Positions 6,830-64,000 of a stretch of DNA of 64,000 nucleotides are shown piece after piece. This stretch comes from Octopus bimaculoides. Lineage: Eukaryota. A program made the translations under genes and the position numbers. How positions within the stretch are numbered: the stretch's first letter is position 1; each line of letters begins with the position of its first letter. Under the pieces are notes generated by a model, which was not told the origin of the DNA, made no database searches, and saw only the letters and a program-made list of their open reading frames with translations. The stretch spans positions 158,837,607 through 158,901,606 of the forward strand of contig NC_068981.1 of NCBI RefSeq assembly GCF_001194135.2, written 5' to 3'.

Positions 6830-7030
6830 CACATAAGCTCACCCCCTCTATCAAATCAATATTGCCTGTGCAGGTGTACAGTGTGCAACATGTTAGGTAT
6901 TGAAGTGATCACAGAGCAATATGAGATGCGTTTTGCTCAAGAACACAAGGCACTACCTGGTCCAGGAATCAAACCCACAATCTTGGAATCATGAATGCAA
7001 CACTCTAACCATTAGGTCATGCATCCCAAG
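6830..7030 (-). mobile_element. tRNA-derived SINE fragment
   Basis: Reverse complement gives a tRNA-like head (..CCTAATGGTTAGAGTG..GGTTTGATTCCTGGACC) followed by GTGTTCTTGAGCAAAAC. Confidence 0.55.
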
Positions 7031-7229
7031 GTGTATGTGCATATGCATGCATACATACATATAAACATAACCCACCCCTAATCTATAGAAATCCATGGCA
7101 GGGTGTTCCAGACACCCTTCCCTGAAGGCAAACTCTCAGATACTTCCAGCATCTTAAAAGTGATCAAGGCAGTTATAAGTTAATATTTTTAAAACTGTGT
7201 TTCTCTTTCTCTTACACATCTCGCAGAGC

Positions 7230-27047: not shown

Positions 27048-27169
27048 CTAATGAATGCTAGTATAACAAGGAAGATGATACTCAGCAGCCAACCAGCACT
27101 GTGGAAAGACTTAGGCATTGCAAGAGCTCCAGTACCAACAATCAGGTTAAAAACGTATATTAGTCCCAA
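27048..27169 (-). CDS. TMEM104: TMEM104 coding exon 2 (LGLIYVFNLIVGTGALAMPKSFHSAGWLLSIIFLVILAFI-S)
   Basis: Acceptor TTTATAAATTTCAG, donor AG|GTGAGT, 122 nt, phase 0 to 2. FNLIVGTGAL.MPK.F..AGW matches the TMEM104/SLC38-like first transmembrane region. Confidence 0.95.
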
Positions 27170-27719
27170 CTGAAATTTATAAATGGACAAAATCAGATGA
27201 TTATAAAGAGTGAAATAAAATTAAATTTAAAAAAAAAAGATATCAACTAAATTATTACTGATTTCGAATGAAATAAGATCTTCAGTTGTTGAGTCTCACA
27301 GGGGCAATGACAAGTGACTGAGACTTCTGGCAATTTACTGTGCTTGAGAAGACATGCCAAGCTAAGTGAAACTGTGTTGACCAGTGCCGGTGACACGTAA
27401 AAGGCATTTGTGCTGGTGACACAAAAAAAAAAAGCACCCATGCTGGTGACACATAAAGGACACCCAATACACTCTGTAGATATATATCATCATCATCATT
27501 AACTTCCATTCACCATACTGACATAGGTTGCATGGTTTGAAAGGAGTTGGCAAGCCAGAGGATTGCACCAGACTCTACCCAGTAAAAGGCAGAGTGTATG
27601 ACGCATGTGTACGAACAGCCATGCTACATGGCAAGTGAAACATGGACCATGACCACAGAGGACATGTGTAAGCTCGCAAGAAATGAAGCCAGTATGCTCC
27701 GATGGATGTGTAATGTCAG

Positions 27720-28636
27720 TGTGCATACACTCAACAGAGTGTAAGTACCTTGAGAGAAAAGTTGGACCTAAGAAGCATCAGTTGTGGTGTGTGAGAAAGA
27801 CAATTGCGCTGGTATGGTCATGTGGCGAGAATGGATGAGGATAGCTGTGCGAAAAAGTGCCACACCCTAGCGGTTGAGGGAACTTGTGGAAGAGGTAGAC
27901 CCAGGTAGACCTGGGATGAGGTGGTGAAGCATTAGGCCTCACCGAGGCAATGACTAGTGACCAAGACCTTTGGAAATATGCTGTGCGTGAGAACACCTGG
28001 CAAGCCAAGTGAGACCATAACCCGTGGCCTTTGCCAGGGGTACAGCAACCCACTTATGTGTACCTTTCCTTCATTGGACACTAAACTCTGCTTGTAAAGA
28101 CCTGTTGAGGCAAGTGAAATCGAAATTGAACCAAATTCGATGACTGGCACCCATGCCAACCTTTCCTTCATTGGACACTAAACTCTGCTTGCGAAGACCT
28201 GTTGGGGCAAGTGAAATCGAAATCGAACCAAATTCAATGACTGGCACCCATGCCAGTGGGGTGCTAACAGCACCGTCCAAGTGTGATCATTACCAGCGTC
28301 GCCTTACTGGCACTTGTGCTGGTGGCACGTGAAAAAAACATTCGAGCGAAGTTGTTGCCAGTGCTGCTGGACTAGCTCCTGTGCAGGTGGCACATAAAAA
28401 ACACCATTTGAGTGTGGCTGTTACTAGTACCGCCTTACTGGCCCTCATGCCAGTGGCACGTAAATGCACCCACTACACTCTCGGAGTGGTTGGCGTTAGG
28501 AAGGGAATCCAGCTGTAGAAACTCTGCCAGATCAGATTGGAGCCTAGTGCAGCCGTCTGGCTTGCCCAGTCCTCAGTCAAATAGTCCAACCCATGTTAGC
28601 ATGGAAAGCAGACGTTAAATGATGATGATGATGATA
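27720..28636 (+). mobile_element. 5'-truncated RTE LINE with 3' UTR repeats and a (GAT)n tail
   Basis: REKLDLRSISCGV..RQLRWYGHVARMDEDSC..; ends GGAAAGCAGACGTTAAATGATGATGATG. Reverse-complement relative of 20070-20900. Confidence 0.9.
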
Positions 28637-29515
28637 TACAGGGTGTCCCAAAAGTCACTGATGGGTTTCAATTTTTAATAACTTCCTTAACTTTACAAAT
28701 AAATGCATGGAATTTTGATAGAAAATAAAGGATATAATGAAAATTAATATGCACAATTCAAATTTTGAAAAACTACTACATCACATATGAAAAATGACAT
28801 CACTTAAATGGCAGCCATTTTCGGCTTCACACGCCCATGCTCTTTCCAAAACTTCCACTATAACATCCTCAAGAATTTCAGACCCCATTTCTCTGATTTC
28901 TATATTGATGTTCCCATTCAGTCACACCAGGGTTTCCAGTTTGTTGATGTAAACCCTCTCTTCCAGGTATCCCTACAAGAAAATATCCGGACTAGTCAGG
29001 TCTAGGGAACATGAAGGCCAGTTGACATTGCCATAGCAGGAGATTATTCTCTCTCCAAAGCACTGCCATAGCAACTGCATTGTTCCTCTTGTGGCATGAG
29101 CAGCTGCCCCACTTTGCTGGAATGATGTGTGAGGTCTACTTTGAATGGCCTTCACATTTCCCAAACTTGACTAGCCCAGATTTTTTTTTTTTTTTTTTTT
29201 TTTTTGTGGGGATACGTAGAAGAGAGGGTTTACATCAACAAACCAGATACCCTGGTGCAACTGATGGAAAACATCAATAGAGAAATCAGAGAAGTGGGGT
29301 CTGAAATTCTTGAGAGTGTTATGGTGCAAGTTTTGGAAAGAGGACGGGCGTGCAAAGCCAAAAATGGCTGCCATCTAAGCGATGTCATTTTTCATATGTG
29401 ATGTAGTGGTGTTGCAAAATTTGAATTGTGCATACTAATTTCCATTATGTCCTTTATATTGTATCAAAATTTCCTGCATTTATTTGCAAAGTTAATAGCT
29501 TCCTTAACTTTACAA

Positions 29516-29517
<2 letters not shown>
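28637..29517. mobile_element. Fold-back Tc1/mariner-derived element (copy 2), inverted relative to copy 1, right terminus rearranged
   Basis: Left arm is nearly identical to the reverse complement of the copy-1 right arm (compare ORFs 28808-29005 and 18833-19030). Confidence 0.9.
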
Positions 29518-29553
<36 letters not shown>

Positions 29554-29640
29554 GATGGGGTTCTTTCAGTTTCCATCTTCCAAATTCAATCACAAGGATT
29601 TGGTTGGCCCGAGGCTATAGTAGAAGACACTTGCCCAAGG

Positions 29641-29707
<67 letters not shown>

Positions 29708-31419
29708 TACATATCTTTATATAATACACACACACATCTTGGAGCACCATCAGTTTAAAAAGTAGAAAACAGCGCCAACAAACCACATACACATTGAAAT
29801 AAAATTACTGAATATGAAAGATAAGCTGGATATATGAGGAGACAGAATTTGTTTCTGCAGCAGACTTCAATGATTGCAGTCAGTGTCACCACATGCACAA
29901 TCATCCTTAAACGGACATTACAACAACATTCAAATATAATAATAAAAATAACATGTACACAAAAATAGCAGCAGCATTAATAGCTTTATTAGCCCAAGAA
30001 CAACAACTGCTCTGTTATACTGAGGATACCCTGCTAAACTCTACTATGGCTGGTATCAGAACCTACCAATGAATAATGGAGAGTGAACATGCCAAGAATA
30101 TCAAACATATTACTATATTTCTACTGAGATGCTCGGTGGTTCTTTCAATTAATTCTAAATAGAACAAAGAATTTAGTAAAATAACTTAGTTATAATTTAA
30201 GCTAGTGTTAGAAACATAAACTATGACTAATGTTTGGTGGAAGATTTTAATTCAGAACTTTTGAAAACAGGATATTTGTAGTACAGAGCCAGAGGCAGTT
30301 TCAGGTGAGTTGGTATCGAAAGGGTTAAACTTCATCATGTAAGATTGCCTGTGCACATAGCCATTAGCCAGGCAGAGGCATATATAGGACAAGAGATTTT
30401 TGGGGTGCACACAGATCTAATTAAAAAGCTGACATGATACTACATAACAACAACAAGTCATTATTTTACATTTCCAATTCGTTTTTTCATCATCCTAGGA
30501 TAGGTCATCATAATTTTTAAAGCTTGATGTGTTTCCTAATAACCAGCCAACTCTAAAATAACGAAATGAGGTCAGCAACATTATTGCCTACAATCTAGTC
30601 TGTTTTAATCTTCAATTACCATTTCTATTGCATTGCTAACTTTTAAACAATAATCTCTCTAACTAAAGAAGAAAAAAAAGGAAAACAAATGAAATTTGTT
30701 GAAATAAGGTTTAGTATATTGAAAATTGATGGTGATGACTTTAGGGTGAATATTAATCGTAACACCTTCTTCATACACCACTACACATATTCTGGTACAT
30801 ATAAAGTTGGCATACTTCTACTTAAATGTTTTGAAACAGGATCTGCCAGACAGAATGAAAAGATCTGCCAAAATGAAAAGAGAAAAGAAAAAGAAAGAAA
30901 ATTTTTAGATTTCATGTTTGTATGGATAACATGACAGGAAGAATCTCATCCTCACTAATGCTTCTTGAGACTCTATTAAAAGCTATGTCAAGTGTTTAAG
31001 CATGATCTGTCAGAATAAATGATACAGTCTGTGGACAGAATCACTAAATTTGAATATTATTCAGTTTCTCCACTTTATGATATTCACAGTTGAACTCAAG
31101 TGCAGTTGCTCAAGCAATTAGTTTTACTGGTAATAGCTTTAATTTCTTTAATTCAAATTTTTCAAACATTTTCACTGGTTAGTCTAATAATTCTTTGTTT
31201 ATTCTGTCAATACTGGGATAACATATCATACTGCCTTCATGCATCAGCAACTTTAACTACATAATATAACACTCAACCTGCAAGAAATAGCAGTTAAATC
31301 GCCCTCAAATCACACCCAGCCAACCTAATAAAGGAAAGATAAATTGGATAGTGTCTGAAAATAAGATGAAATGGTTGCAATAGCAATGCTTCTCACCTAA
31401 AATTTGCTCAGTCACAACT

Positions 31420-31809
31420 TGTTGTTGTTGTTGGCACTCCGTCGCTTAAGACGTCGAGGGTTCCAGTTGATCCGATCAACGGAACAGCCTGCTCATGAAA
31501 TTAATGTGCAAGTGGCTGAGCACTCCACAGATACGTGTACCCATAACGTAGTTATCGGGGATAATCAGCGTGACACAGTGTGACAAGGCTGACCCTTTGA
31601 ATTACAGGCACAACAGAAACAGGAAGTAAGAGTGAGAGAAAGTTGTGGTGGAAGAATACAGCAGGGTTTACCACCATCCCCTGCCGGAGCCTCGTGGAGA
31701 TTTAGGTGTTTACGCTCAATAAACACTCACAATACCCGGTCTGGGAATCGAAACCATGATCCTATGACCGCGAGTCCGCTGCCCTAACTACTGGGCCATT
31801 GCACCTCCA
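31420..31809 (-). mobile_element. Full-length long tRNA-derived SINE with a (CAA)n tail
   Basis: Reverse complement starts TGGAGGTGCAATGGCCCAGTAGTTAGGGCAGCGGACTCGCGG...GGTTTCGATTCCCAGACC and ends CGGAGTGCCAACAACAAC. Confidence 0.9.
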
Positions 31810-32111
31810 CTATCAGTCACAACTGATCTGGGATTAAACAACAACAACAGTAACTGCAGCCGTACCAATACTGTACCAAGTCAGGTGTCATTTCTTTAAG
31901 ACATGTGGCTCACTGTTTCCCTGATTATACTAAAACTTTTCCAATGATAAAGGACTTCCTGTTAAAAATATTGCCTTCATTTCAAATCTTTCAATTGTTA
32001 ACCATAATTTTTTTTTTGTTGGATGTATGTAATGGTATTAGAATTCCAAAACATCAGCCAAACTCAATATTTGAAAGGGAATAAGAACTTCATACCAAAT
32101 ATAAAATACAA

Positions 32112-32715
32112 ATATGCTGTGCGTGAGAAGACCTGGCAAGCCAAGTGAGACCATAATTCGTGGCTTCTGCCAGGGGTGTAGCCAGCCCATTTATTCATAC
32201 CTTACTTCATTGGACACTAAACTCTGCTTGCAAAGACCTGTTGAACCAAATTCGATGACTGGCACCTGTGCCAGTGGAGCGCTAACAGCACCGTCCAAGT
32301 GTGATCATTGCCAGAGCAGTTGTCTGGCTTCCATGCTGGTGGCACGTAAATAGCACCATTTGAGCATGATCGTTACCAGCGTTGCCTTACTGGCAACTGT
32401 GCCAGTGGCACGTGAAAAAACATTTGAGCGAGGTCATTGCTAGTGCCACTGGACCGGCTCCTGTGCAGGTGGCACGTAAAAAACACCATTTGAGCGTAGC
32501 AGTTGCCAGTACCACCTGACTGGCTCTTGTGCCAGTGGCATGTAAAAGCACTCACTACACTCTCGGAGTGGTTGGCGTTAGGAAGGGCATCCAGCTGTAG
32601 AAACTCTGCCAGATCAGATTGGAGCCTGGTGCAGCCATCTGGTTCGCCAGTCCTCAGTCAAATCGTCCAACCCATACCAGCATGGAAAGCAGACGTTAAA
32701 CGATGATGATGATGA
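32112..32715 (+). mobile_element. RTE LINE 3' UTR-only insertion with internal tandem repeats and a (GAT)n tail
   Basis: Same 3' UTR as 28000-28636. Other copies at about 27290-27510 (minus) and 58780-59163. Confidence 0.85.
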
Positions 32716-32844
32716 AGAAGAAGAGAGCACAAATGACTTGAGAGTAAAAACTGGGCTTAAGAGTAAATAAATACCACATGTGAAACAAAAATGATTGCTG
32801 GTACAGACATGATGTGTATGGAAGATGACATTTGGATGACAATG

Positions 32845-32957
32845 CTAAGTGATCCAAGTGGAAGGAACTAAGTGATCCAAGTGGAAGGAACTAAGTGATC
32901 CAAGTGGAAGGAACTAAGTGATCCAAGTGGAAGGAACTAAGTGATCAAAGTGGAAGA
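32845..32957. repeat. 23-bp minisatellite, about 5 copies
   Basis: CTAAGTGATCCAAGTGGAAGGAA in tandem with no spacers. Confidence 0.95.
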
Positions 32958-33137
32958 GAAAGGCTGAAGTAGACACAGGAAGAAAAGTGATCTAGAGAGA
33001 CGTGATGAAAACTAATCGAGAGAGACAGAACTGTAGTATGACTGTACTAGCATTACTAAACACATACATTTTTAACTTCAAGTAGGCTCAAACGACATTA
33101 TAAGTTTACAGCTCCATTTGGTCTGCGATTGGCCAAA

Positions 33138-33305
33138 CAAACAGGCACCCTCTACTAGGTCTAAACAGGCACCCTCTACTACATCCAAATAGGCTCCCTC
33201 TACTACGTCCAAATAGGCTCCCTCTACTACGTCCAAATAGGCTCCCTCTACTACGTTCAAACAGGCTCCCTCTACTACATTCAAACAGGCTCCCTCTACT
33301 ACGTC
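33138..33305. repeat. 24-bp minisatellite, 7 copies
   Basis: CAAAYAGGCWCCCTCTACTACRTY in tandem with no spacers. Confidence 0.95.
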
Positions 33306-33807
33306 CATTTGTCACATATATAATGTGGCTGTGGCCATGTTCCTTTACTTAGTTTCTCTAAGTGGCTTGTAGTTTGGTTCTATCACGTTTGCACTGGCGT
33401 CTCTCATCTGTGTGTGCTAGCAGGATTGACCAAACTCAATGTTGTTATCTCTCATGTTTTCTAGAAACATTTCTATCAAGTCTCTTTCTCCTTACACAAA
33501 GTACACCTCATATCTTCATGCATTCATTTACTGCTAACACACTATAGACATCTCTATAACACAAAACTTCTTTACAGAAATCTTACACAAGGCATTTTAC
33601 ATTGTACATAACCCACTGCTGTGAATAAACTTTGCTATATGATGGGCTTCCACAGTTTCTGTTTACTAAATTCACTCACAAGGCTTTGGTTGACCAAGGT
33701 ACTGCACAGTGGAACTGAACCCAAAACCACACGGTTGCATAGCAAGCTTCATAACCATACAGTCATTTTTCTACCTATTTATTTATCATTATCATTTATC
33801 TATTTAT

Positions 33808-34030
33808 CTAACCCTTTAACACTTAAACCGACCATATCTGGCCCAAATATTCTTCCTGTTTTATATTCAAATTGGCCAGATCCAGCCTCTAACACCTACC
33901 TAATAATGTCATTCTAAAAACATACAATCACGTCATTGAAATCTGCACAAGATAATGCATGAGTAATTCAAAATAATGTAAATAAATAAGCATTAGATTT
34001 AAAAGAATAATCTGAATGCTAGAAGGTTAA
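33808..34030. mobile_element. piggyBac-like MITE
   Basis: (C)TAA-CCCTTTAAC ... AGAAGG-TTAA termini. A related TTAA-CCC type end lies at 30190-30328. Confidence 0.5.
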
Positions 34031-35544
34031 GGCAACAAGCTAGTAAAATCATCAGTACATTAGACAAAATGCTTAGTGGCATCTCTTTCAGCCTTACATA
34101 CTGCTGAGGTCAACTTTGCCTTTCATCTGTTCAGGGTCAATAAAATAAGAACCAGTTATGACTGGGACTGATGTAATCAACTAATCCCCTCCCCTAAAGT
34201 TTCAAGCCTTGAGCCTATAGTAGAAAAAATTATTATTTATTCATTCAGTTGCTTTATGAAGGACATTAATGATGTAATTCAAGTGAAATACCTAGCTATA
34301 ACTGAGATTCAAATATGATTCACAGGTTCATTTAAGCAGGAACTTAGCTCTATTTGGCAGAGCCTACTTCAAAACATTTAAGCATAAATATGGTAACTAT
34401 GCTATGTACCAGAATAGTAAAATTTTGGATAAAGCAGATGGAACAGACTGAGAATATTGGTCTCATGGACATGTAGATGCATGACCAAGACAAAAGGCGA
34501 CAAGATATACAGCATCCCTACTGAACTTGTAACAAAATAAATGCAAAAACAACAATTATTGATGAAGAAACCAATCCATGCCATAGTCCAACCCCACTTA
34601 TGCCAGCATTGAACATGGACATTAAATGATGATTATGAAGAAATAATGATGAAAGTTCAAAGAAGAAACTGTTATGATGCCTTCATTTCAGGATGATTTG
34701 GAAATTTCTCTTCATGGAAGATATATAGACCCCTATGATCAAAGATATTATCCCACTGTTTTTTCTTTTCAGATTATATTATCCAGTGCGGCCTTTTTTG
34801 AGACAGTAGGATATGATGTAAAGGAGATTTGGTTGCCATTTCTAATAGGTCAAGTTAGTTTAAGATGTTGATATTGTTGTTTAGCCCATGGTCAGCTCTG
34901 ATTGAGCAGGCCTATGATCAATGACTTTCCTGTATGCAGGGAACCCAATACCACCCAAGTCAACTTTTTTCTAAGATGATTGAATGTGATTTGAGGTAAT
35001 TTGGTAGTTATTTCTAACTACTTGAATAACCAAGTAGAGGCTCCTTCATTAGCCCAAGAAGCTCCCTAAATGGTAGAAAGTAAGGGAAAATATGGTATGG
35101 TGTAATAAGAGCATGTGTTTGGCTAAAGAAAGAGAATGAGAGAATTTTGTGATACATTTGAGTTGATAAAATGAGAGAAAAAGCAAACTGTTTACATTCT
35201 AAGATAGAACCCCTAATCTTGAAGATCTTCCAGCTTGGCTCTGAACTGAACAACACAAGGTGATCTAAATCTGTTTTGGTCAGCTGAGGGTGACAGAACT
35301 AATCTAATCACCAACAAATTGTTGCAAACCAGACTATGGTGCACTGCTTTAACAACTCTCTGCTACTTAATCCCTGTCATTGAAAAGACCTTACAGATAT
35401 CAACGGACAGGCAAAGAGCTATGTTGAGAGTGGTAAGCTGCTATATGACCATTACTAGGCTAAACGGTTAATGACAAGTGGAACCTATTAACAGGCTGCA
35501 TTGACAGTAGATTTTCAAACCAAAACAGTTGAACCTTTTACCAA

Positions 35545-36727
35545 TACCAGGTCATCCCATAAGTTCTGTCCAAATTTTGAATAAAGAAAACAAGTGATCA
35601 AATGTTATAATTAATTGAAATTTAATCATCAATGTATCTATGACTTCCTTCCATCAATTTACAAGCTTTTTAATCCCATCAATGTAAAACTCTTTTGCTT
35701 TCAAAGGGAAGAACTCTGAAATGTTAGTTTCGACCTCCCCCTGGCTTGCAAAAGTTATGTCCCCCAAATGATTCTGTAAACTACAAAACAAATGGTAGTC
35801 TGGAGGAGCAAGGTCAGGAGAATAAGGTGGATGAGGAATTTTTTTCCCAACCAAGCTCTTCAGCTTCTATGATGTGATCTTTGCAGTGTGGGGTCATNNN
35901 NNNNNNNNNNNNNNNNNNNNNNNNNNNNNNNNNNNNNNNNNNNNNNNNNNNNNNNNNNNNNNNNNNNNNNNNNNNNNNNNNNNNNNNNNNNNNNNNNNNN
36001 NNNNNNNNNNNNNNNNNNNNNNNNNNNNNNNNNNNNNNNNNNNNNNNNNNNNNNNNNNNNNNNNNNNNNNNNNNNNNNNNNNNNNNNNNCAGTCACAAGT
36101 CTATCCAAAAAGTGTGAAATGAGTTCGCGAGAATGGAGAGAAGAGCAGATATGAACTCGGGATTTGCGGTTGCTTTCGGACAATTCATGAGGCACCCATT
36201 TTCCAAGTTTAGGAACCTTTCCAAGATGTTGAAGATGACGATGAACAGTTGTATGGTTTGAACTAAGCTTTATTGCCAATTCTTCAACTGATAATGCAGG
36301 ATTGTCTTCAAGTAATACCTCAAGGAGTTTATCATCAAACTCAACTGGACATCTTGTTCGATCTCCATCTTCAAGGCTGAAATCTCCACTTTTGAATTTT
36401 GCAAACCATCTTCTGCAAGTTCTTTCATTCAAGCATTCTTTCCCATAAACTGAATGTATGTTTCGAGTCGCTTTGGCTGCAGAGTTTCCTTTTTTGTACT
36501 CATAAAACATTATGCGCCTCAAATGCTCTTTAGATACTTCCATGTTAGAAAGGGTTTTAATCAAAGAAATTTTAACTATTATTCTATAAAATAATATTTA
36601 ATTAGTTTAAATGTACATAAATGCATAAAAATAATTTTTAATTCTATTAGACATTCTAAAATACTATTAAATTTCATTCAATTTTAAAAAATGTAAAATC
36701 GGACAGAACTTATGGGATGACCTGATA
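35545..36727 (-). mobile_element. Mariner (DD34D-type) element with TIRs; transposase disrupted and gapped
   Basis: TIR CAGGTCATCCCATAAGTTCTGTCC at both ends, TA flanks; MEVSKEHLR...WFAKFKSGDFSLED...WVPHEL...HPPYSPDLAPPDYHLF. Confidence 0.95.
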
Positions 36728-37513
36728 GATGAAAAGCATTACTTTTGTTGCAATTTTCAAGGACAAGCAAACACTGGTGCATCAGTTACAGGTATATCTA
36801 GCTATGAAGGGGCCATCATCAGCACACAATTTATTTGTTCCAGCTAAGAAACTGGGAGGGAAAATATCTGTCATCACTTGCAGTAATTTCTTCCTAAAAC
36901 CTTTACCCTCTCTTTATGGAGCCCACAAGAGATAAAATTCATCAAAGCAGGGTCTGTGCCAAAGTATTCAGAAAGTTGCACAATGTGTGCTGTCTTCTCC
37001 CGGCCCTACATCGTGCATCCCCCTCCTGCAGCCCTACAATGTGCTCCCCTCTTTAGCTTTACAATGTGTTCCCTCTTCAGTCCTACACTGTACGTCTCCT
37101 TTAACAATTTTTTTAATGTAAATTCATTCCGCCATGACCTTCTTTACACCTGTGAAAAACGTTGTTGAAAAATTATAATTGCGCACAATAAATATTATTA
37201 TTATGTCTATCACCAGGTAAAATATAACAAAATCTTAAATGTTTCACGCCAATTTGTTTGATCATAAAATCACACGACCTTCTCGTCTTCTCCGTCCCAC
37301 CTCAACAACAGCCCTCCATCATCTTTTGTTTTGCGAGTGACTCTCACCCACTCTATTACTGAGATTTCATGAAAGAGTGGGGATGTTATTTTGTTTGGGG
37401 GGGGGTGTAAGAAATTTTGTCCAAATTGCTCAGAATTTGTGCAGTGCCCCAGATTTTCGCACCCTAAGCGAGCTCCCAGTTTACCAAGTGTGTAGCGCCG
37501 ACTCTAGCACAAG

Positions 37514-37698
37514 AGGGTAAATTTTCAGATTAACACCCGCACGATTTTCACTAGAGTGTTAGGGTTAGGGTTTTAGGGTGAGGGTTAAGGTTTTAGGGTT
37601 AGGGACGGAATTCCCTAACCCTAAAACACTAACCGTAACCCTAAAACCCTAACACCCTAGTGAAAATCGTGCGGGTGTTAATCTAAAAATTTACCCCC
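37514..37698. mobile_element. Palindromic MITE enclosing head-to-head telomeric repeats (TTAGGG)n...(CCCTAA)n
   Basis: About 40-bp TIR GGGTAAATTTTCAGATTAACACCCGCACGATTTTCACTAG and its near-exact reverse complement; CAAG(A) on both flanks. Confidence 0.85.
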
Positions 37699-37900
37699 AA
37701 GAGTATAACTATATAAAAAATGAGTACTTAAGAGCTATGTTTGTAAATTGAGAATGGTGTTTATCTTTTAAAGTGAACGTCTAACATTTTAAAAGTATAA
37801 AAATTGTTCATATTGAGTTAACAACAATTTTGTTTGTAAACAGTTACGAAAATAACGAAAAACATGAGAATATTAAACTGATGTAGTGTTAAAAACTTAC

Positions 37901-37945
37901 CATTGTTGGGTACTGAGCCCCACTGCTAGTTAAATCTCCAGCCAT
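37901..37945 (-). CDS. TMEM104: TMEM104 first coding exon (MAGDLTSSGAQYPTM); whole exon including 5' UTR is about 37901-38039
   Basis: ATG at 37945, phase-0 donor ATG|GTAAGT at 37900, acceptor TATTTTACTAG at 38040. Resembles the human TMEM104 N-terminus MAGEITETGELYSSY (from memory) and splices in frame to the 27169 exon. Confidence 0.9.
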
Positions 37946-50879: not shown

Positions 50880-52450
50880 CTAGCAGAGATACCCGACTTT
50901 GCTCGGGATTAAAATAGCATAGTTTAGTTTGTATATATATATATATATATTACAGTTTTGTTGAAACGTGATACGGGAAAATGCAGCATTGACGACAAAA
51001 CATTTGTGGAGTAAATGAAGGGCTAATTTGACTAAGCGATATGACATGCGTCCATTTGGGGATTCCAGGCCCTAACTTGTCATGGAAAATTGGGTATGGG
51101 GTGTATGTGATTTTTGAATACACTGAAAAGTTGTCAGTGGATATAATCTCCTTTGCGGCGGTCGGCGCTGCGTCTAACACGACCCATTGTATGGTTGACT
51201 GTCGAATGAATGTAGGTGTAATGGAGATGTTGTACGTAAATGGGAACATTCTGGAAAGAGGCTGCAATGGGAGACGGTAAAGGATGAAGTGAACTGTTGA
51301 CATGTTGCAGAAGGCGAAGGGTTGACTTTGGATTGCTGGTGTGGCTGTAGAATAAGAAACATAAAATGAGCCTATGCAGTCAAATGAGAATATGTAGTAA
51401 TAAATTACTTGATGGCTTACCGCGTGGTTGGTGGGAGTAATTGGAGAATATGCTTTGATACTGAAGTCCATGCAGGAAACTGCTTTGTTGAGGCAGTCTT
51501 CGGGTTTGTTCGTATTATGCCGAAATGGTATCCATCTTCATTCACAAAGAGCAGTGGATTTTGGAGCGTATCGCAGGATGTAGTAATTCCTACAAAACTT
51601 CTTGGTAAACAATATTCGTTGTTTTCCCTTGTGGAACAAATGCAAATTGATTTTTCTTTTTTGCTTTCCACTCTAGAGAAGCCAACATTTAATTGCACGT
51701 GTGAGAAGCATGACTCTTCCAAGTGAAGTTTGACCCTGGAATTTGTTGATATATATTGCGAAGTTGATACGAATAGGAAATTGCACTCTTCTGAATGAAA
51801 AGGAAATTTCTGCTCCCAATGGAATGAGAGGAATTCTGGGTATGAAAACTTCCTCTCCTTTTCCACACCCAAAGAAAATGGTGGCCTCGATAACATGTGG
51901 CATCATCTTTACCACTAGGCACGTCCCATTGCAGAGTGTTGGTGGATCCAAATTCCTCAATAACATTACTGGAGTTCCAATCTGTGGGGAGGTAGTCCTG
52001 GAGGTTCCAATGAATTGAGAAATTCCGTTGGATAATTTACCACCTCTTCTGGATTAACTGACTTATAGATGTGAGGACTTCCAGGAATGTATTGCAGCAG
52101 CTGCTCAATAATTTTACTTAAGTGCTGTTTTTTGGAGCCATTATTGCTCTTTCACACAGCCAATTGAGATTGTGATAATTTTTTGACTAATGAATGTAAG
52201 AAAGACAATCAATTTCTGAAAGTTACTTCGCAAAGAGTTACCTCCCTTTTCCACATAATCCAGGAAGGGTAGGTTTCTGCTCTCAGAAGGCCCGTTACTC
52301 ATTATGTGAAAACTTTTAAGAGTCTAAACCCTTTCTCTGAAACATAAGTAATGTATGTTCCCAGTTTGGAGAAGATCAATTGTGAACTTCAGAAGTTATG
52401 CGGGCTTACACACACATACACACAACCTCACTTTTATATGTATGTAAAGA
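50880..52450 (-). mobile_element. Internally deleted Helitron with helicase C-terminal remnant, extra 3' cargo and both termini
   Basis: MLLRNLDPPTLCNGT...IPRIPL...RRVQFPIRINFAIYINKFQGQT...PQGKTTNIVYQEVL*; 3' hairpin CCCGAGCAAAGTCGGG plus CTAG at 50880-50883; 5' TCTTTACATACATATAAAAGTGAG at about 52450. Confidence 0.85.
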
Positions 52451-53650
52451 ATAAAACGTTTTGAATGGTACAACAATGCACTATGATACAAACAATGGGC
52501 TATATACCTGTTGTAATTTAGTCATCCATAGTCTGATAATATTTCGGAATAAAATTCCTTCTTCAGATATTCTTAGATGGAGTCGCTGCTATAATCGGTT
52601 TTCCAACGGCTTTTCTTTTCTTTTTTTTTTTCGGAAGCGTCTCAGCATTGGTCTCACGAAGCCCCTTCCGGAATTCTTCTTGAGAAGTGCGCGAGGTCGG
52701 CCATGTCTCAATCTTGTGCGTGCTGGTACATCGGTAGCGCTGCTTCTGAGTTATGTATTATACATGCAGCTTCCTATCCCCCCCTTTTTTGTTATAAATA
52801 ATAGATGAGCATATTATCAAAAATGAACCTACACGCATCCAGATGTAGCTAAATAATATATTGATTACCAACCTCTAGCCTGTTGTTAATTTGGGGCCCT
52901 AGTCTGTGTATTTCTTATACCTTTCCAACTGTTTTTGACAAGGCATCCAGAATATCAGTGGGACCTCTTTTTATTCACTTGGGTATCACAATTTTCTGGG
53001 CATCATGTGACTTCTCCTTTGTTTGTGTTACCACCTGACAGCTGGAGATAACCATGACTGTTTGTTTTAGATGATAACATGCTGCAAGTTTACTCAAAGA
53101 TTTGAGACTTAGTATTGTAGACGACATTGCAGGACAAGTTCGCCATGCAGGGGGAAAATCTATGTATATATAGATAATGAACAACAAATCCACACGTTAG
53201 AAAAATTTAGTAAAATTATCACAGTTTAACCCTAGATCAACCTGACAGAAAAGACCTAAGATCAAAAGCAATACAGCTGAAGAAATCCCGTCTTTTTTCT
53301 TTGGGCAAGAAACCCAAGATCATATTCTCCAACGTGTTCCCCGCATCTTTTATTTTATTTTATTTTTTTAAAGCGGAATCTGTAGAAGATTTGACTTGTT
53401 TCTAATAGATTGAGCGACCACGTTGAAGTTACCTCGATGGTTAAAGAATGGTCGAAGAGTCTAGCGGAAATAGGACGAAGTTCGGGACCATATTGTTTTA
53501 GAATGATTTAAAGGTGAATTCTAGTTTAAGCACCCATATAACCCGTCATAACTTTTTTATTTTTATTTTTTGGAATTTTCAGAAAGTTTTGCGAATATGT
53601 ATTCTACACACGGGAAGTTATGCGATCATGAAAAAAAAAAAAAAAAAAAA

Positions 53651-54443
53651 NNNNNNNNNNNNNNNNNNNNNNNNNNNNNNNNNNNNNNNNNNNNNNNNNN
53701 NNNNNNNNNNNNNNNNNNNNNNNNNNNNNNNNNNNNNNNNNNNNNNNNNNNNNNNNNNNNNNNNNNNNNNNNNNNNNNNNNNNNNNNNNNNNNNNNNNNN
53801 NNNNNNNNNNNNNNNNNNNNNNNNNNNNNNNNNNNNNNNNNNNNNNNNNNNNNNNNNNNNNNNNNNNNNNNNNNNNNNNNNNNNNNNNNNNNNNNNNNNN
53901 NNNNNNNNNNNNNNNNNNNNNNNNNNNNNNNNNNNNNNNNNNNNNNNNNNNNNNNNNNNNNNNNNNNNNNNNNNNNNNNNNNNNNNNNNNNNNNNNNNNN
54001 NNNNNNNNNNNNNNNNNNNNNNNNNNNNNNNNNNNNNNNNNNNNNNNNNNNNNNNNNNNNNNNNNNNNNNNNNNNNNNNNNNNNNNNNNNNNNNNNNNNN
54101 NNNNNNNNNNNNNNNNNNNNNNNNNNNNNNNNNNNNNNNNNNNNNNNNNNNNNNNNNNNNNNNNNNNNNNNNNNNNNNNNNNNNNNNNNNNNNNNNNNNN
54201 NNNNNNNNNNNNNNNNNNNNNNNNNNNNNNNNNNNNNNNNNNNNNNNNNNNNNNNNNNNNNNNNNNNNNNNNNNNNNNNNNNNNNNNNNNNNNNNNNNNN
54301 NNNNNNNNNNNNNNNNNNNNNNNNNNNNNNNNNNNNNNNNNNNNNNNNNNNNNNNNNNNNNNNNNNNNNNNNNNNNNNNNNNNNNNNNNNNNNNNNNNNN
54401 NNNNNNNNNNNNNNNNNNNNNNNNNNNNNNNNNNNNNNNNNNN
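53651..54443. other. Assembly gap (largest). Other gaps at about 20370, 21049-21344, 24308-24545, 35898-36089, 42224, 49572 and 59980-60615
   Basis: Runs of N. Confidence 1.
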
Positions 54444-54953
54444 GGGTTGGTGCATAATTATTGCGGCTTTTTTTCAACAAATTTTATTCAACAAAAATAA
54501 CAACATACGCAGAGAGAGAGAGAGAGAGATTAACTGTACCCACAAAATATTTTTTATGACAAATAAACTAGCGACAAAACCACCTGAAATTTTTTCCGTG
54601 GTAGGTAAACTAACAGATACTAATTACACCTTGAGTAAGTGAACGGTACACATAATAAATAATAAAGGATGCCTCGAACACATCGTTACTTTAGCCACTT
54701 TTTAAATAAGTAATGAAATTATTGTATACAGTGCTCAGGTGCACTACAACATGCTTCGTTTTAATCATGCTCACCAAAACGAAAACAATAAATCTACTTT
54801 TTTAAAGGAAAAACTACTGTGTCTGTGACTACAAGTATCTGCAATAATTTTATCTCAAACTTCAAATACTGAAGTTTTAATATAATATGACTGTCCAGAG
54901 GTGGAATACTTTTCAATGGGTACATAGTTTACATAGATACCGAATTTATCAAC

Positions 54954-55030
54954 ATGCTTATTAACTGTAACACGAAAATCATCTCCGATCGTATAATTTT
55001 GGTACCGTACGAAGCTGCTCATGTACCAAA
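54954..55030 (+). CDS. NAT9: NAT9 (N-acetyltransferase 9) first coding exon (MLINCNTKIISDRIILVPYEAAHVP-K)
   Basis: ATG at 54954, phase-2 donor AA|GTAAGT at 55031; candidate acceptors give exon starts at 54899 or 54937. Matches the NAT9 N-terminus MRLNQNTLLLGKKVVLVPYTSEHVPR (from memory). The next exon (YHEWM...) was not found in the window. Confidence 0.85.
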
Positions 55031-55489
55031 GTAAGTTCTACTCAACCATACAAACCTATTTTTAAATTTTATTTAATGATTTTAAGTTTTGAAGTTAGCT
55101 CCTTATTTTGAAAAGAGCTACTTACCATGTCGTTTATCTTGATAGATCTATGACGTTTGTCGCTATGACAAATAACTTGTTTCTTTTATCAGTAAAACTG
55201 ATTTTAGGCTGAATCAATAGAGCATCGAATAAATGCCTTGTACTCACGAGTACTGGAGTCAATATCTTCGATGTCACTATTGACTTTTTGCGGTCCTAAT
55301 TTCGACATAACTACAGATTTCTGCCCCACCGACTTTGGATGATCATAACTTTCAGAAAAATGGATATTTTATAATGAAATTTTCTACGAATATATGTTAT
55401 ATCATGTAGATTCTGAATTTACAAAACTTTTGGGGAGAAAGTATTTTAGGAGGGGGTGGATGGAGAATTTCGGAAAATTCACCGGCATC

Positions 55490-56167
55490 CACTTCAATTC
55501 GTCTTAACTTTCGAGAAAATGGATATTTTTTAATGAAATTCTCTACAAATATACCTCGGACTATGTAGATTTCGAGAACATAGGAATTTTGAGGGAAAAC
55601 AATTGGGGGTTATTTTTGAGGACCGTTCCCCACTCAGGGTGTTTCGGAACAAGTTCATATTTGTTTCATTTTCTCCGTTTGTGCATCCGTAGATTTCTAC
55701 TGAAGCAACAAACGGGCCATGAAGGCAAATGAAGCCCTCACCAGAAAACTCTTTATGCTAAAAATAACAGCTACAGGTCTGGTACACAGAAGTATGTTAT
55801 TAAGACGACTTAACTGTTGCATACGATCTTTTGGATCTTTTCCTTAGAAGTGTAAAGTATAATTTGTTACATAATCTCTGTAAATATGATATTGAATGGA
55901 ATAATTCCTCGTTTGAACCTTTTTAATTACATGTGTGTGTGGTAGACATCTACGGATGCACAAACGCACACAAAACGGAGAAAATGAAACAAATATGGAC
56001 GACTTGTTCTGAAACACCCTCGAGTGGGGAACGCTTCTCAAAAATAACCCCCAGTTGTTTTCCCCCAAAATTCATATATTCTCGGAATCTACATAGTCCG
56101 AGGTATATTTGTAGAGAATTTCATTAAAAAATATCCATTTTCTTGAAAGTTAAGACGAATTGAAGTG
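55490..56167. mobile_element. MITE/fold-back element with TIRs of about 220 bp and CACT...AGTG termini (CMC-like)
   Basis: CACTTCAATTCGTCTTAACTTTC ... GAAAGTTAAGACGAATTGAAGTG; arms about 55490-55710 and 55945-56167; partial extra arm at 55335-55470. Confidence 0.8.
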
Positions 56168-58779
56168 TTGTAATCTTAAAAATCTCATTTCAGTAGTCTT
56201 TACAAACCCTATTTCCTTCAGTGTAACTCTCATGCAGAGAATGCTTATATATTGAATGTTGTGCCCCCAAACTAAAGCCTTACAGAATGAAGTCCCTATT
56301 TTAAAGGTGGGGTTTGTTGAAAAAAATTATGCTTCTATATTGACCTGGACAAGCAGCAACACAGCAGCTCTGTTTGTAATGTTTTGATTGCTCATTGTCT
56401 CAGAATATATGAATTTTGTGTCACACTGAGTACAGATTTTGTTATAACCTTATTGCAATGCTTTTAATGCGATTCTTTTCAGTTTATCATTCTAACAAAT
56501 AACTGTTAATAAGAAGTTGGTGTTAGAAAAGAACACTCCCAAAGATCTAAATAATAGATATTTGAAAAACATCATAATCATTTTATGTCTACTTTCTATG
56601 CTGGCATGAAATTGGATGGATCATCACAGTTAAGTCTGTTGGAAATTACTGCCCTCTCAGAGGATTGGAGGACTGTCTTGCTTATATGTTTCATTGTGAT
56701 TTTAGTTTCTATAGCTGGATGCCCTTCCTATCACCAACCACTTTACGGAATGTACTAGTATTTTATTGTGCTACCAGCACTATGGAGTTGCTTTGTACTC
56801 CATAAAATTTGAAGAGTCTTCTCTACCTTATGATGTGCTCATTCACTCAAGGTAACATGACTGAAAGGTAATTAGATGAATTAAAATGGTGGGGTGAAGG
56901 AAACCAAAGAATGTAAAAACAAATTGATGGGATGACAGAGTAGTAGATGGAATGAGAAAGTGATGGGTAGTAATAGATGTGGACAATCTATTGTTTCTAA
57001 AAACAAAATATTTTGAGTTATTACTTAGGAAACATATCTGTTGCATTGTTTATGTTTTCCTTTTCCTTTTTCTTTCTTTCTTTTTTTTTTTTTTTTTTTT
57101 GTTTTGGTTGACATTTTGAAATGTTAAACTTGAAACATTTGAAATTATATCAGATATAAAATAAGAGTAGAATTTGGTCTGAAATAGATTTCTCATCTAA
57201 AATTTTGAAAAATGATGTACTTTAAACATTCTTTCCCTCTCCGAGAACCCAGTCAGTGTGTCAACATATGACATGTGAGTTCAATTCCTATAGAGCTCTC
57301 AATTTTTATTCACTTTCACATTTGCTTTGTGTATCTGTACAACACCAGTTACAAACCAATCTTAATTTATTCATCACTAAATGAAATAGTGTAGCTTCAA
57401 CAACCTACATTCATCACCCTAACAAACATTAACATCAGATAAATAAAATACTAGCCATATCCTTAAGAAACAATACAAAATGCTACCTAGCAAACAATCT
57501 GTGGTCAGCCAACACATGTATATAATAACATCGCGAAACTATATTTTCTTGAACTCTTTACCAAAAGATCTGTTCTCTTACCCATTCATTTTAACTTATA
57601 GTTACAAGTTTGCCCAACACCTCAGCAAAACAAACACACAGCCTCATATACAGGCTGTGTGCATTATATTCCACAGACAGGATATGCGACTATTCTAAAT
57701 CCATACCAACCGCTCACAAACCTGGCTCTATGCAAATGAAATAGCTTTTCCAGATTTTATCTCCCTTTTTAGCAGCAACACTGGAGAACATCAGATATAA
57801 CCTATCACCCACACACATTCACACACCCATCGAGAAAACAGAATTGTTAAGAATTTTGTATGACCTTAACCCTAAAACAAAAGCAAAAAAAAAAAAAAGC
57901 ATGCAATGCACAAACACACCTAGAACACTCACAGGTATTATATTCAACCATAATAATGAAACAATAACATTGTAAATACATTATGGACTATGTGACTTCT
58001 GCTTGGGTTCCAATGTGTCCTTAAGAAATTGTAAATAACACAAAACAAGATACTTCATGTCATCACAGTCTGCACAATGATCACACCCAAAATACTCAAA
58101 ATGAATGACAACTTGGATATATGAAAGGTAGAGTTTGGTTGACTTAATTCACATATCTCTCAATCCTTTCAACTACATGTGTAATTATCCATAAACACGG
58201 TTACACTTTACAAAATATTTCTGCAGCATTATACTAAGAATAAGAACAAACAAACACCAACATATAACATACATGAAATAGCAGTAGCATCAATAACATT
58301 ATTAGAGTGAAATACGGCTGGGATGCTTACAATCAATCAGAGAGGAAGAGAAATTACAACAATCATGCTCCAACAAAGAACACTCTGCCTATACCTATAT
58401 CATCATCATTATCATCATCATCATCATCATCATTATTTAACATCCATTTTCTATTCTGGTGTGCATGGTTTGCTAGCAAGTCAGAAGATTGTATCAAGCT
58501 CCACTATCTGCTTTGTCATGATTTCTGTGACTGGATGCTTTTCCAAATGCCAACTATTCTACAAAGTGTTCTGAGTGCTTTTTACATAGCACCAGCAACA
58601 GTGAGGTCACCAAATAATTTACTAGACGAGACCTCCTATGATGAGGTGTGGGAGTAGTATTGAGGAAGGTGGCTTTGATGTACAAAACACGAACTGAATA
58701 GGGAAAAACAAAGTAACACTTTGGCACTGGTACATTGCATCCTACACAATAAATCACTGTATAGGTGCAAGCATGGCTG

Positions 58780-59163
58780 TGCGGTAAAAGGCTTAAGCAC
58801 CATCTGAATGTGATTGATGTCAGCCCCTTTGCCCTGACTGGTTCCTGTTCTGGTGGCACGTAAAAAGTACCATCCGATCATGGTCGATGCCAGCCCCACC
58901 TTGACTGGCTCCTGTGTTGGTGGCACGTAAAAAGTACCATCCAATCATGGTCGATGCCAGCCCTCTCTGGCTCCTGTGCTGGTGGCACATAAAAAGCACC
59001 CACTACACTCTCAGAGTGGTTGGCGTTAGGAAGGGCATCCAGCTGTAGAAGCACTGCCAGATCAGACTGGAGCCTGGTGCAGCTTCCTGGCTTCCCAGAC
59101 CCCAGTTGAACCATCCGATCCATGTCAGCATGGAAAACTGACGTTAAACGATGATGATGATGG
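58780..59163 (+). mobile_element. RTE LINE 3' UTR fragment with a (GAT)n tail
   Basis: GGTGGCACGTAAAAAGTACC repeats, GTGGTTGGCGTTAGGAAGGGCATCCAGCTGTAG, ACGTTAAACGATGATGATG. Confidence 0.85.
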
Positions 59164-61494
59164 TCCTGGGTTCAGTCCCACTGCATGGCACCTTGGACAA
59201 GTGTTTTCTACTAAGCCTTGTGAGTGAATTTGGTAGACAGAAACTGAAAGAAACTCATCATATATGTGTGTGTTTGCGTCTCTGTTCTTTACCACCTCTG
59301 GACAACTGGTAAAATGCATACTGGAGTAAATATTATGGTCATTAGTTGCAGACATGGTGCATCAGGTGCAGTGAACCTACGTATGACACTTATATCTGTA
59401 TCATGAGTTAAATCATTCAGGACTGACGTTGGTCCAAGAAAAAAGTAATTAATTCTCCAAATAAATAAATGAATGAAAAGAAAAAAAAAACAACTGCATT
59501 GCGGCAGATTTATAACTGGAGCCTGATGCAGCTCTCCACTTACCAGTTCCAATCAAACTGTATAACCCATGCCAGCATGGAAAAACGGACGCTAAATAAC
59601 GATGATGACAACAACTTATTTTGAGTAAATGTTTCCAACGTAGACAACAGGCCAGAAAATTTGGGGATAGTTGAGTTGATTAAACCAACCACAGTAATTG
59701 GTTGATACTATATTTTGACAGGCAATTCCAGAAGGAATGAAAGGCGAAGTTGACTTTGACATACAGCTAACATCTGGTAGATTGGGTAACAAAGAGCAAT
59801 AAAAATCGGCCAAGACTTCCGCCCCACCCAACCACCTTTCCCCCCAAATTTTTTTTCAACTCAACCCCCCGCCCTCCTTTTCGGCTACGGTGAATATGAA
59901 TCTGCAAAAAATTTGGCAAAAATCAGCATTTCTAAATTACCACCCACCCCCATTTCCTTCATTTTTTTCACTTTTTTAGNNNNNNNNNNNNNNNNNNNNN
60001 NNNNNNNNNNNNNNNNNNNNNNNNNNNNNNNNNNNNNNNNNNNNNNNNNNNNNNNNNNNNNNNNNNNNNNNNNNNNNNNNNNNNNNNNNNNNNNNNNNNN
60101 NNNNNNNNNNNNNNNNNNNNNNNNNNNNNNNNNNNNNNNNNNNNNNNNNNNNNNNNNNNNNNNNNNNNNNNNNNNNNNNNNNNNNNNNNNNNNNNNNNNN
60201 NNNNNNNNNNNNNNNNNNNNNNNNNNNNNNNNNNNNNNNNNNNNNNNNNNNNNNNNNNNNNNNNNNNNNNNNNNNNNNNNNNNNNNNNNNNNNNNNNNNN
60301 NNNNNNNNNNNNNNNNNNNNNNNNNNNNNNNNNNNNNNNNNNNNNNNNNNNNNNNNNNNNNNNNNNNNNNNNNNNNNNNNNNNNNNNNNNNNNNNNNNNN
60401 NNNNNNNNNNNNNNNNNNNNNNNNNNNNNNNNNNNNNNNNNNNNNNNNNNNNNNNNNNNNNNNNNNNNNNNNNNNNNNNNNNNNNNNNNNNNNNNNNNNN
60501 NNNNNNNNNNNNNNNNNNNNNNNNNNNNNNNNNNNNNNNNNNNNNNNNNNNNNNNNNNNNNNNNNNNNNNNNNNNNNNNNNNNNNNNNNNNNNNNNNNNN
60601 NNNNNNNNNNNNNNAAAAAACACCATTTTAAAATATTAATCTTCCCCCACCCTCCAAATTCTTCAATTTTCACTTTTTTCAGAAACTTTACAAAATTGTT
60701 TTTTCAGAATCATAATCTCTGTATTTTTCTACGTATTTCGCAAAAAAATTTCTGAAAAAAGTGAAAATTGAGGAGTGAGGGTGGTGGGGGAATTAAAAAT
60801 TTTTAAATGCCGTTTTTTTTTTTTTTTTTCAGAATCAGAATCTCCGTACTCGAAAATGGGGGGGGGGAGTCTGTAAAAAAAAACAAACAAAAGAAAACGA
60901 AAGGGTGTGCGGTCCACATTCTTTACGTCCGCCGACAAAAGCTGAAGCGAAACTCATCTCCCCCACTCTCTTTCTCTCTATGCGTTTGTGTGTGTAACAT
61001 TGTTGATGTTAGTTGGCGAAGGATATAAATAACATTAAGAAAACTGACAACCAAATGTTTTCGAAGTTCCTTTTTTATATTTATTTTGTACTATTACAAA
61101 GATGGCTCTTGTTATTCTCACTGTCAGAAATATAATGAACCAGTAATTAGCCTTCTGTAAATCTGTAACCAACGACATTACTGTTTACTAATCACGATAC
61201 AGCGCCTCAAAATGCTAATGAAAAATAAATAAATGTCTATTAGTAGACGTAGCTATTAAAAAAAAAAAAACTAATGTAATTTGCCTGACGGATTAACAGT
61301 AGAGTTATGTCCCTTGCACCAGTCTTTAATTGGATCAATCATTTATATTTGTTTCACTTTTCTAGTAGATTTCATTGACACATGGTTGAGAGATAAATAC
61401 ATGATGCAGTAATGTGTGTGATTCTTAAATAAGAATATTATTGACAGTGATTTCGAAGTTTCGGTCACTTAAGCCATGTCAATAATATTCTTGA

Positions 61495-61780
61495 TTAACC
61501 CATTACTTACCAGTGATTTCGTATGAGATCACTTAAAAATTACAAATTTCGTAATTATCTGTCAATATTTACACATATCTAACCTTTTTGCTATATCTAC
61601 TAGGTATATTTCTCTGATATTCAAATGAGGTTTGCTCATTTTTCACCCAATATCTCGCTTATTTCTATTTAAAATGTTATCTTGATCATTCCAGCGTGTT
61701 TCTAAGGCTGTTTTATGATAGAAATCAAAGTTTCATTAAAAAAATTCCAGTTAATACAATTATGGGAGGTAATGGGTTAA
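61495..61780. mobile_element. piggyBac-like MITE
   Basis: TTAA-CCCATTACTT ... AGGTAATGGG-TTAA. Confidence 0.7.
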
Positions 61781-62859
61781 GAATAATAAATTTGTACTCT
61801 AGAAATATAGAGTAACCCATCAGATTAACGTAAAATTGTTTTCATTATAACTGAACATAAAAACAAACATTAACATAATATAAATATGTGTGTGTGTATT
61901 GTTTTAGCCATTGGATTACAGACATGCCGGAGCACCACCTCCAAGAATTTTTAAACGAATGAATTGACCCCAGTACATTTTTTTTAAAGCCTAGTACTTA
62001 CCCTATTAGACTATTTTGCCGAACTTCGTAAACACACCAACACTGGTTGTCAAGTGGTGGTGGAGGACAAACGCAAACAGACAGGCACACACACATCTCT
62101 CTCTGTCTGTCTGTCTCTCTGTCTCTATATATATATCATTAACCATCATCATTTAACATCTGCTTTCCATGCTGGCATGGATTGGACGGTGTGATAGGAG
62201 CTGGCAAGCTCCAGAGCTTTCTTTCTACTTTGTTACCCTAGTGAAATTCCTTATACATACACACGCACGCACGTGCGTGGGCGCGCGCGCACACACACAC
62301 ACAGCGTGAGAAATATACAGAAAAAGAATGAGAGACAGTATACTAAATTTAAAGTGGGGAAGTTCACAATGAGAAAAGCATTAAAGACAGAGAGAGACAG
62401 ATAGTGAAAGCCACATAGTCAGATGCATGACTGACTATAAAGTTCTTAGTTTCATCAATAGTTATAGACTTTAATCTTATTTTCTGTTTGAAGTGGTTGT
62501 TAGTGGTATTACTATAGTAAGTAGCAAGGATTGTTGAGAATGATGATGTTAATATCATGGCAAGGTTTTAAAATTTTATACCTCGCTATTGCCAATATTG
62601 TAATTTCTTTTTGGAAGGCTATATTAACTAATGACATAATTGACTGACATTTTTGTTTCATGTTCAGTAAACACATTGTTATAAATGCATGATCAGTGAG
62701 TGAAGAAGTGTCATGCTCATGTGTATGATGTAACAGTTTACATTAGGGAGTTAACTCAACTTCCAAGCTTACACTAAAATGTTTATATTGTGTTGGTATG
62801 CTCTGTTGCTTGTCAAATTACTTTGTGTTGATAAAGATGTTTTTAGTTATGATGTTTGT

Positions 62860-63735: not shown

Positions 63736-64000
63736 TATTTTTATTGATAGACAGTAGTTGAATGTAAGACTTGTGTTCTGTTTTATGATTTCTTTCTATT
63801 ATAGGCATAGCTATATGGTTAAGAAGCCCACTTTGCAACCATATGGTTTGGGATTCAGTGACATTGCATGGCACTTTAAGAAGTGTCTTCTATGATAGCC
63901 CCAGGCTGACCAATGCTTGGCGAGTTACTTTGGGGGAGAGAAACTATGTGCAAGCATGTTGTGTGTGTATCATCATCTTCATTTAGCATCTGATTTTCAT

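Follow-up and report, generated by a model that had tools for sequence, protein, structure and literature searches.

Conserved ancient microsyntenic pairs (CAMPs), of which HSPE1-HSPD1 is an example, are described by Irimia et al. (2012; PMC3514665) as mostly divergent, with an orientation that is preferentially kept and with short intergenic distances, and their persistence is attributed there in part to shared promoters. In human, NAT9 and TMEM104 lie at 17q25.1, where a single CpG-island region of 780 bp bears the TSS200 annotation of both genes, and a chromatin immunoprecipitation study found MYCN/WDR5 bound to one 'promoter of the NAT9 and TMEM104 genes'. Here we describe the same two genes in a 64,000-nt stretch of the Octopus bimaculoides genome (contig NC_068981.1, positions 158,837,607 to 158,901,606 of the forward strand; hereafter the window), in which TMEM104 starts on the minus strand and NAT9 on the plus strand. 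For the locus as a whole, the explanation towards which we lean is that of an inherited head-to-head pair that has been stretched by transposons and whose members now have separate promoters. The gene identities, exon structures, synteny, transposon content and CpG pattern on which this explanation draws were established directly.

Identity of the two divergent genes

Only the 5' ends of TMEM104 and NAT9 fall inside the window, and NAT9 is represented by a single exon (Table 1). The identification of this plus-strand exon as the first coding exon of NAT9, a predicted GNAT acetyltransferase now named alpha/beta-tubulin N-acetyltransferase 9 (Pfam Acetyltransf_3), is supported by a profile built from residues 1-26 of 85 representative NAT9 proteins, the relatives having been gathered by exhaustive search with the human protein from the database. 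Among the 2033 six-frame open reading frame (ORF) segments of the window, this exon scored 48.6 bits (E-value: 5.6e-14) and the runner-up 7.7 bits. A provisional human NAT9 sequence was used as a lead only; it matches Homo sapiens database entries at 91-99% identity. Residues 1-26 of the exon align to residues 1-26 of nearly all representatives, with identity up to 65%, and the NAT9 signature M-x-[IL]-N-x-N-T...[IV]-x-L-V-P-Y-x3-H-V-[PE]-[KR] is present from residue 1. The exon ends in CCAAA followed by gtaagt, such that a phase-2 intron splits codon 26. A 77-nt exon 1 with a phase-2 intron is common to the NAT9 genes of Lottia, Biomphalaria, Bradybaena, Aricia, Bufo and Takifugu. A Pfam scan of the 26-aa exon gave no match.

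NAT9 exon 2 was not found in positions 55031-64000 by tblastn or with motif regular expressions, a stretch that includes a 635-N gap (59980-60614). The next NAT9 exon sits past the window end or within this gap. Its absence from view is unsurprising because the NAT9 gene of a toad and of a land snail covers 22-32 kb, and 6.6-kb first introns are known in snails and the toad. A single visible 77-nt exon with no second exon recovered downstream (gap included) is also what would be seen if the exon were a relic, either a pseudogene fragment or a duplicated first exon that belongs to no functional gene. We consider this very improbable: the ORF runs unbroken from its ATG up to the conserved intron position, which carries a consensus GTAAGT donor, the full N-terminal signature is retained, and an intron of more than 9 kb is unremarkable given the intron and gene lengths in snails and the toad. 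Moreover, the exon lies in a CpG-undepleted, repeat-free block that is followed downstream by CpG depletion of the gene-body type, as for a germline-expressed gene.

The minus-strand gene is supported as TMEM104, a predicted Aa_trans/SLC38-like membrane protein. Its first three coding exons, when joined, encode 81 aa of a multi-pass domain expected at about 490-500 aa, and these 81 codons match Pfam Aa_trans (PF01490) with an E-value of 1.1e-9 (38 bits, against a cut-off of 25.6). A search of a 5.8-billion-protein collection with the 81 aa returned Aa_trans fragments only (best identity 68%), including one under the name transmembrane protein 104. At its N-terminus the sequence has the first-transmembrane motif of Aa_trans proteins, and its nearest relatives are TMEM104 proteins. 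Exon 2 is 72% identical to the corresponding exon of the limpet Lottia and 61% identical to that of the toad Bufo, while exon 1 of Lottia likewise has 15 codons, MAEGSLDRDAQYSTS, followed by gtgagt. A provisional human TMEM104 sequence served as a lead only; its matches coincide with TMEM104 fragments derived from the database. An earlier sequence-only reading of the window had placed the TMEM104 start at 37945 (-) and the NAT9 start at 54954 (+), and both placements are borne out by the domain, exon and profile matches given above.

The TMEM104 introns hold several features of their own. Approximately 250-390 bp into intron 1 are two degenerate telomere-like arrays, one TTAGGG-like (37558-37604) and one CCCTAA-like (37616-37653), which are opposed and 12 bp apart and which may represent either interstitial telomeric sequence or a mobile-element end. 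Intron 2 contains, beside two N gaps, an ORF at 20589-20906 (-) with a LINE-type reverse-transcriptase C-terminal motif (…RRLCWYGHVARMDED…). A Pif1/Helitron-type helicase C-terminal fragment is located at 12755-13132 (-), also in a TMEM104 intron.

Conservation of the pair across genomes

NAT9 or TMEM104 loci were inspected with 10-kb flanks in ten other genomes, and the human arrangement was taken from the literature (two papers). In Lottia gigantea (KB203251.1, about 580.2-589.6 kb), the two genes are head-to-head with 1,309 bp from ATG to ATG: NAT9 (+) is at position 10001 of the locus and a complete TMEM104 (-), found by tblastn, is at 2993-8692 (about 580248-585947 of the record). The latter is 51% identical to the provisional human TMEM104 sequence over 251 residues (243-493), in addition to the matches of exons 1-3. 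The gene list returned for that locus omits Lottia TMEM104, which looks like an annotation gap, a point of modest value in itself. In the toad Bufo gargarizans the arrangement is again head-to-head, with NAT9 (+) at locus position 10001 and 6,247 bp between the ATGs; the partner is a 490-aa Aa_trans gene (-) that ends at locus position 3754 and that matches TMEM104 in exon 2 with 74% identity.

NAT9 and TMEM104 are not adjacent in the teleost Takifugu (fugu), the butterfly Aricia, the bug Apolygus (in which a nuclear-receptor gene is upstream of TMEM104), the nematode Caenorhabditis remanei or the choanoflagellate Salpingoeca rosetta. The same is true of two heterobranch snails, Biomphalaria pfeifferi and Bradybaena similaris, where the divergent partner of NAT9 is RRP7 (locus 2262-9599 and 1-3374, respectively); TMEM104 was apparently swapped for RRP7 once, in the common ancestor of these snails. 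For the spider Trichonephila, 5.2 kb upstream was in view, too little to call the arrangement.

Because the same oriented pair occurs four times, on both sides of the protostome-deuterostome split, the best explanation of its distribution is that an early bilaterian already had it and that descendant lineages lost it repeatedly. Judging from these loci, the pair survives in tetrapods and in at least two mollusc-grade genomes and appears to have been broken independently in many other lineages. Loss on this scale argues against a strict functional requirement for the linkage. The sequence-only reading had cited a head-to-head arrangement in human and proposed that it was deeply conserved. The first statement agrees with the published reports of one shared promoter CpG island, and the second gains from Lottia, which supplies the pair in another invertebrate, and from Bufo.

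The window carries eight N gaps, none of which touches an exon, and three of them lie between the start exons. At the 10-N gap 49572-49581, the 133 bp on either side (49439-49571 and 49582-49714) are 100% identical. This gap is an assembly artefact, in which overlapping contig ends were left unmerged and 133 bp were duplicated; the sequence is therefore continuous there and the spacer is approximately 143 bp shorter than written. The flanks of the other two gaps, 42204-42213 and 53651-54443, show no overlap. This unproven continuity, together with the absence of the pair from seven sampled lineages, would be compatible with the two genes having become neighbours by mis-scaffolding over N gaps or by an independent rearrangement, the likeness to human being coincidental. 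We find such a coincidence scarcely credible, as the same genes stand in the same 5'-5' orientation in Lottia, Bufo and human, four independent origins of one oriented pair among roughly 20,000 genes are very improbable, and at the 49572 gap the flanks truly overlap. The adjacency has independent support from synteny in Lottia and Bufo.

The spacer, its CpG pattern and the promoters

Between the start codons of TMEM104 and NAT9 is a spacer of 17,008-17,009 bp (37946-54953) within a window that is AT-rich (37% GC) and transposon-rich. At this resolution it contains no recognisable host gene: ORF segments of at least 45 aa gave nothing beyond transposon domains in Pfam, although small-exon genes lacking a Pfam domain could escape such a scan, and searches for Rfam families and tRNAs found none. 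The sequence-only reading was correct on this point as well. The elements identified in the spacer are listed in Table 1. The Tc1/mariner element has a CpG observed/expected ratio of about 1.0, making it relatively undepleted, and may be a young insertion.

Table 1. Features of the window (positions in the 64,000-nt stretch)
Feature	Position	Strand	Remarks
TMEM104 coding exon 3	19532-19457	-	YLTVTFVTEAMAVANFKLKMGRNNK; counterpart in Lottia locus 7634-7551
TMEM104 coding exon 2	27169-27048	-	LGLIYVFNLIVGTGALAMPKSFHSAGWLLSIIFLVILAFI..; acceptor tttcag; in frame with exon 1
N gap	35898-36089		within TMEM104 intron 1
CpG-undepleted domain	37001-56200		observed/expected 0.74; CpG-depleted gene bodies on both sides
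Repeat-free block at TMEM104 start exon	37001-39500		CpG observed/expected locally as high as 1.0-1.1; probable TMEM104 promoter region
TMEM104 coding exon 1	37945-37901	-	ATG at 37945; 15 codons, MAGDLTSSGAQYPTM; donor gtaagt
Tc1/mariner element	about 40432-42093		~1.66 kb; terminal inverted repeats ~220 bp, 87-91% complementary; DDE_3, HTH_Tnp_Tc3_2 and HTH_SB fragments
gag-like zinc-knuckle ORF	42850-43296		in spacer
Mos1-type mariner remnant	about 43900-45200		HTH domain
Short repeat copies	45514-45716, 47360-47569, 50667-50856, 49274-49797		such repeats also present in introns
Pif1/Helitron-like helicase C-terminal fragment	51676-52053	-	Pfam-scanned
Repeat-free block at NAT9 start exon	54444-56200		CpG observed/expected 0.93-0.96; left edge is the 793-N gap; probable promoter-proximal region
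NAT9 first coding exon	54954-55030	+	77 nt, 25 codons + 2 nt; MLINCNTKIISDRIILVPYEAAHVPK; donor gtaagt

The spacer and its borders differ from the rest of the window in CpG content. Three-segment maximum-likelihood change points were found at 37001 and 56001-56201 (log-likelihood gain 92), with CpG observed/expected ratios of 0.29 for positions 1-37000, 0.74 for 37001-56200 and 0.34 for 56201-64000, and the TG/CA excess in the two flanks matches their CpG depletion. Measured from each ATG exon, the breaks fall approximately 0.9 kb inside TMEM104 and 1.25 kb inside NAT9. The highest ratios of the undepleted domain (0.9-1.1) are at its two ends, 37.0-39.5 and 54.4-56.2 kb. For repeat families that are shared between the spacer and the gene bodies, 26 sites have CG in the spacer copies versus TG/CA in the gene-body copies, and 3 show the reverse.

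Methylation in Octopus bimaculoides is sparse over intergenic DNA and transposons, while the bodies of constitutively expressed genes are methylated and their transcription starts unmethylated (PMC9476566). Read this way, both genes would be germline-expressed and body-methylated, a methylation state that we infer from the CpG ratios. The pattern favours an untranscribed spacer between two promoter-proximal blocks, each predicted to be unmethylated. Because the CpG breaks are symmetric if each transcription start adjoins its ATG exon, we consider it moderately probable that NAT9 and TMEM104 now have separate promoters, each beside its own start exon. Indirectly, this points to transcription starts about 16 kb apart, compared with the less than 1 kb between divergent starts by which a bidirectional promoter is defined. 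At 34000-36000 and 56500-57500, CpG is near zero (observed/expected 0.06-0.10, 2-3 CpGs per kb), far below other gene-body sequence.

Alternatively, a single bidirectional promoter at about 38.15-38.94 kb could drive both genes, with a short non-coding NAT9 exon that ends at 38937 (+) and is spliced to a site just upstream of the ATG at 54954, leaving a 16-kb intron full of transposons in the NAT9 5' untranslated region (UTR). Consistent with this, positions 37.9-38.95 kb are repeat-free and CpG-undepleted (observed/expected about 1.0), donor-like hexamers are present at 38937 (+; GTAAGT) and 38149 (-; GTAAGG), and the ancestral layout is compact (1.3 kb in Lottia and a shared CpG island in human). 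Strand-composition skews over the spacer, tried as a footprint of transcription, were noisy and uninformative; T slightly exceeds A on the plus strand, which speaks weakly in the same direction. Several observations make this arrangement rather unlikely. First, the two strands of the window contain 47 and 52 copies of GTAAG, about one per 1.25 kb per strand, and eleven lie on the plus strand of the spacer, including one at 54635 that precedes the NAT9 ATG by only 320 bp; because this density is at chance level, the hexamers at 38149 and 38937 carry no weight. Second, the pyrimidine tracts of the acceptor candidates ahead of the NAT9 ATG are poor (7-9 of 15 positions). Third, there is a second repeat-free, CpG-rich block at the NAT9 exon, with depletion starting approximately 1.25 kb downstream, which mirrors TMEM104; a NAT9 start at 38.9 kb would imply an undepleted stretch of 17 kb, versus one that ends about 0.9 kb inside the gene for TMEM104. 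Fourth, CpGs that were lost from gene-body copies of repeats persist in the spacer copies.

These results also bear on what the sequence-only reading had proposed for this region, namely that both start exons have upstream splice acceptors, that opposing donors at 38149 (-) and 38937 (+) flank a region free of transposable elements, that an ancient bidirectional promoter survives there (38.1-38.9 kb), and that NAT9 intron 1 has grown to about 16 kb of transposable elements. The donors do exist, but they occur at chance-level density and the NAT9 acceptors are weak. Neither the surviving promoter nor the 16-kb intron is supported, the splice evidence being at chance level, and the CpG pattern mildly contradicts both.

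Separate promoters would have arisen as follows. In the compact ancestral state, NAT9 and TMEM104 probably shared a bidirectional promoter region. In this lineage, transposons would then have inserted between the two transcription starts, separating them by about 16-17 kb, after which each gene would have had its own promoter at its own start exon. For NAT9, this promoter would be located within about 54.4-54.95 kb or in the 793-N gap 53651-54443, which stops 510 bp short of the NAT9 ATG and may conceal the NAT9 promoter or 5' UTR.

Several points weigh against an intact pair with separate promoters. NAT9 has one exon within the window, and its standing as an intact gene rests on that exon. 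The positions of the transcription starts are predictions from sequence features. The adjacency of the two genes spans two gaps of unproven continuity and thus depends on scaffolding. In the comparison of repeat copies, 18 of the 26 asymmetric CpG sites trace to one flank copy. Finally, Octopus bimaculoides has a large class of genes in which the first third is unmethylated (PMC9476566).

If the linkage has persisted since the bilaterian ancestor even here, where more than 15 kb of transposons would have pulled the core promoters apart, something beyond a shared core promoter might hold the pair together; a distal regulatory element or an unmethylated chromatin domain common to both genes would be examples. 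We regard this as unlikely and put it forward tentatively; if it were so, the 19-kb CpG-undepleted domain, which extends from about 1 kb within one gene to about 1 kb within the other, would be the footprint of the shared domain.

A comparison of the promoter-proximal blocks of the window with the intergenic regions of Lottia and Bufo for conserved non-coding sequence gave nothing significant. At about 38070-38085 (-), the window contains TCATGTGAC, at a distance from the TMEM104 ATG like that in Lottia, where GTCACGTGAT and TCATGTGAC, both E-box/CLEAR-like motifs, occur at about 8800-8835 (-) of the locus, approximately 110-140 bp upstream of the TMEM104 ATG. Because two 1-kb regions are expected to have 9-mers in common by chance, this TCATGTGAC-type E-box, found near the TMEM104 start codon in both the window and Lottia, is at most a hint and was dropped as evidence.

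Comparison with known divergent pairs

NAT9 and TMEM104 are ordinary housekeeping-type, single-copy host genes, and hundreds of conserved divergent pairs are already known in animals, such that one more leaves the picture unchanged. The interest of the locus is that a probably shared ancestral promoter region appears to have been stretched to 17 kb by transposons with gene order intact. This is a clean case that bears on whether core-promoter sharing or something looser holds such pairs. In addition, TMEM104 is essentially uncharacterised, and an old linkage to the tubulin acetyltransferase NAT9 offers a cheap hypothesis of co-expression; this hypothesis is weakened by the repeated loss of linkage, including the NAT9-RRP7 arrangement of heterobranch snails.

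NAT9-TMEM104 resembles the CAMPs in that unrelated genes are adjacent in 5'-5' orientation across distant animal lineages. It differs from them in that the spacer here is approximately 17 kb rather than <1 kb and in that the pair has been lost in many lineages. NAT9 and TMEM104 were not found named together with synteny or microsynteny in searchable texts (a search outside which the CAMP supplementary lists fall), and the pair is new, or at least not explicitly described, as a conserved divergent pair.

Compared with the human NAT9/TMEM104 CpG-island promoter, the genes are orthologous and likewise head-to-head. The octopus locus differs in its GC content of 29-32%, without a CpG island in the vertebrate sense, in the 17 kb between the start codons, and in having transposons between them along with two separate CpG-undepleted blocks. 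The likeness to the Lottia locus extends to the 15-codon TMEM104 exon 1, the boundaries of exon 2 and the 77-nt NAT9 exon 1 with its phase-2 intron. In contrast, the distance between the ATGs is 1,309 bp in Lottia and 17,009 bp here, and this roughly 13-fold growth of the spacer without loss of linkage is the sole unusual feature of the pair in the octopus.

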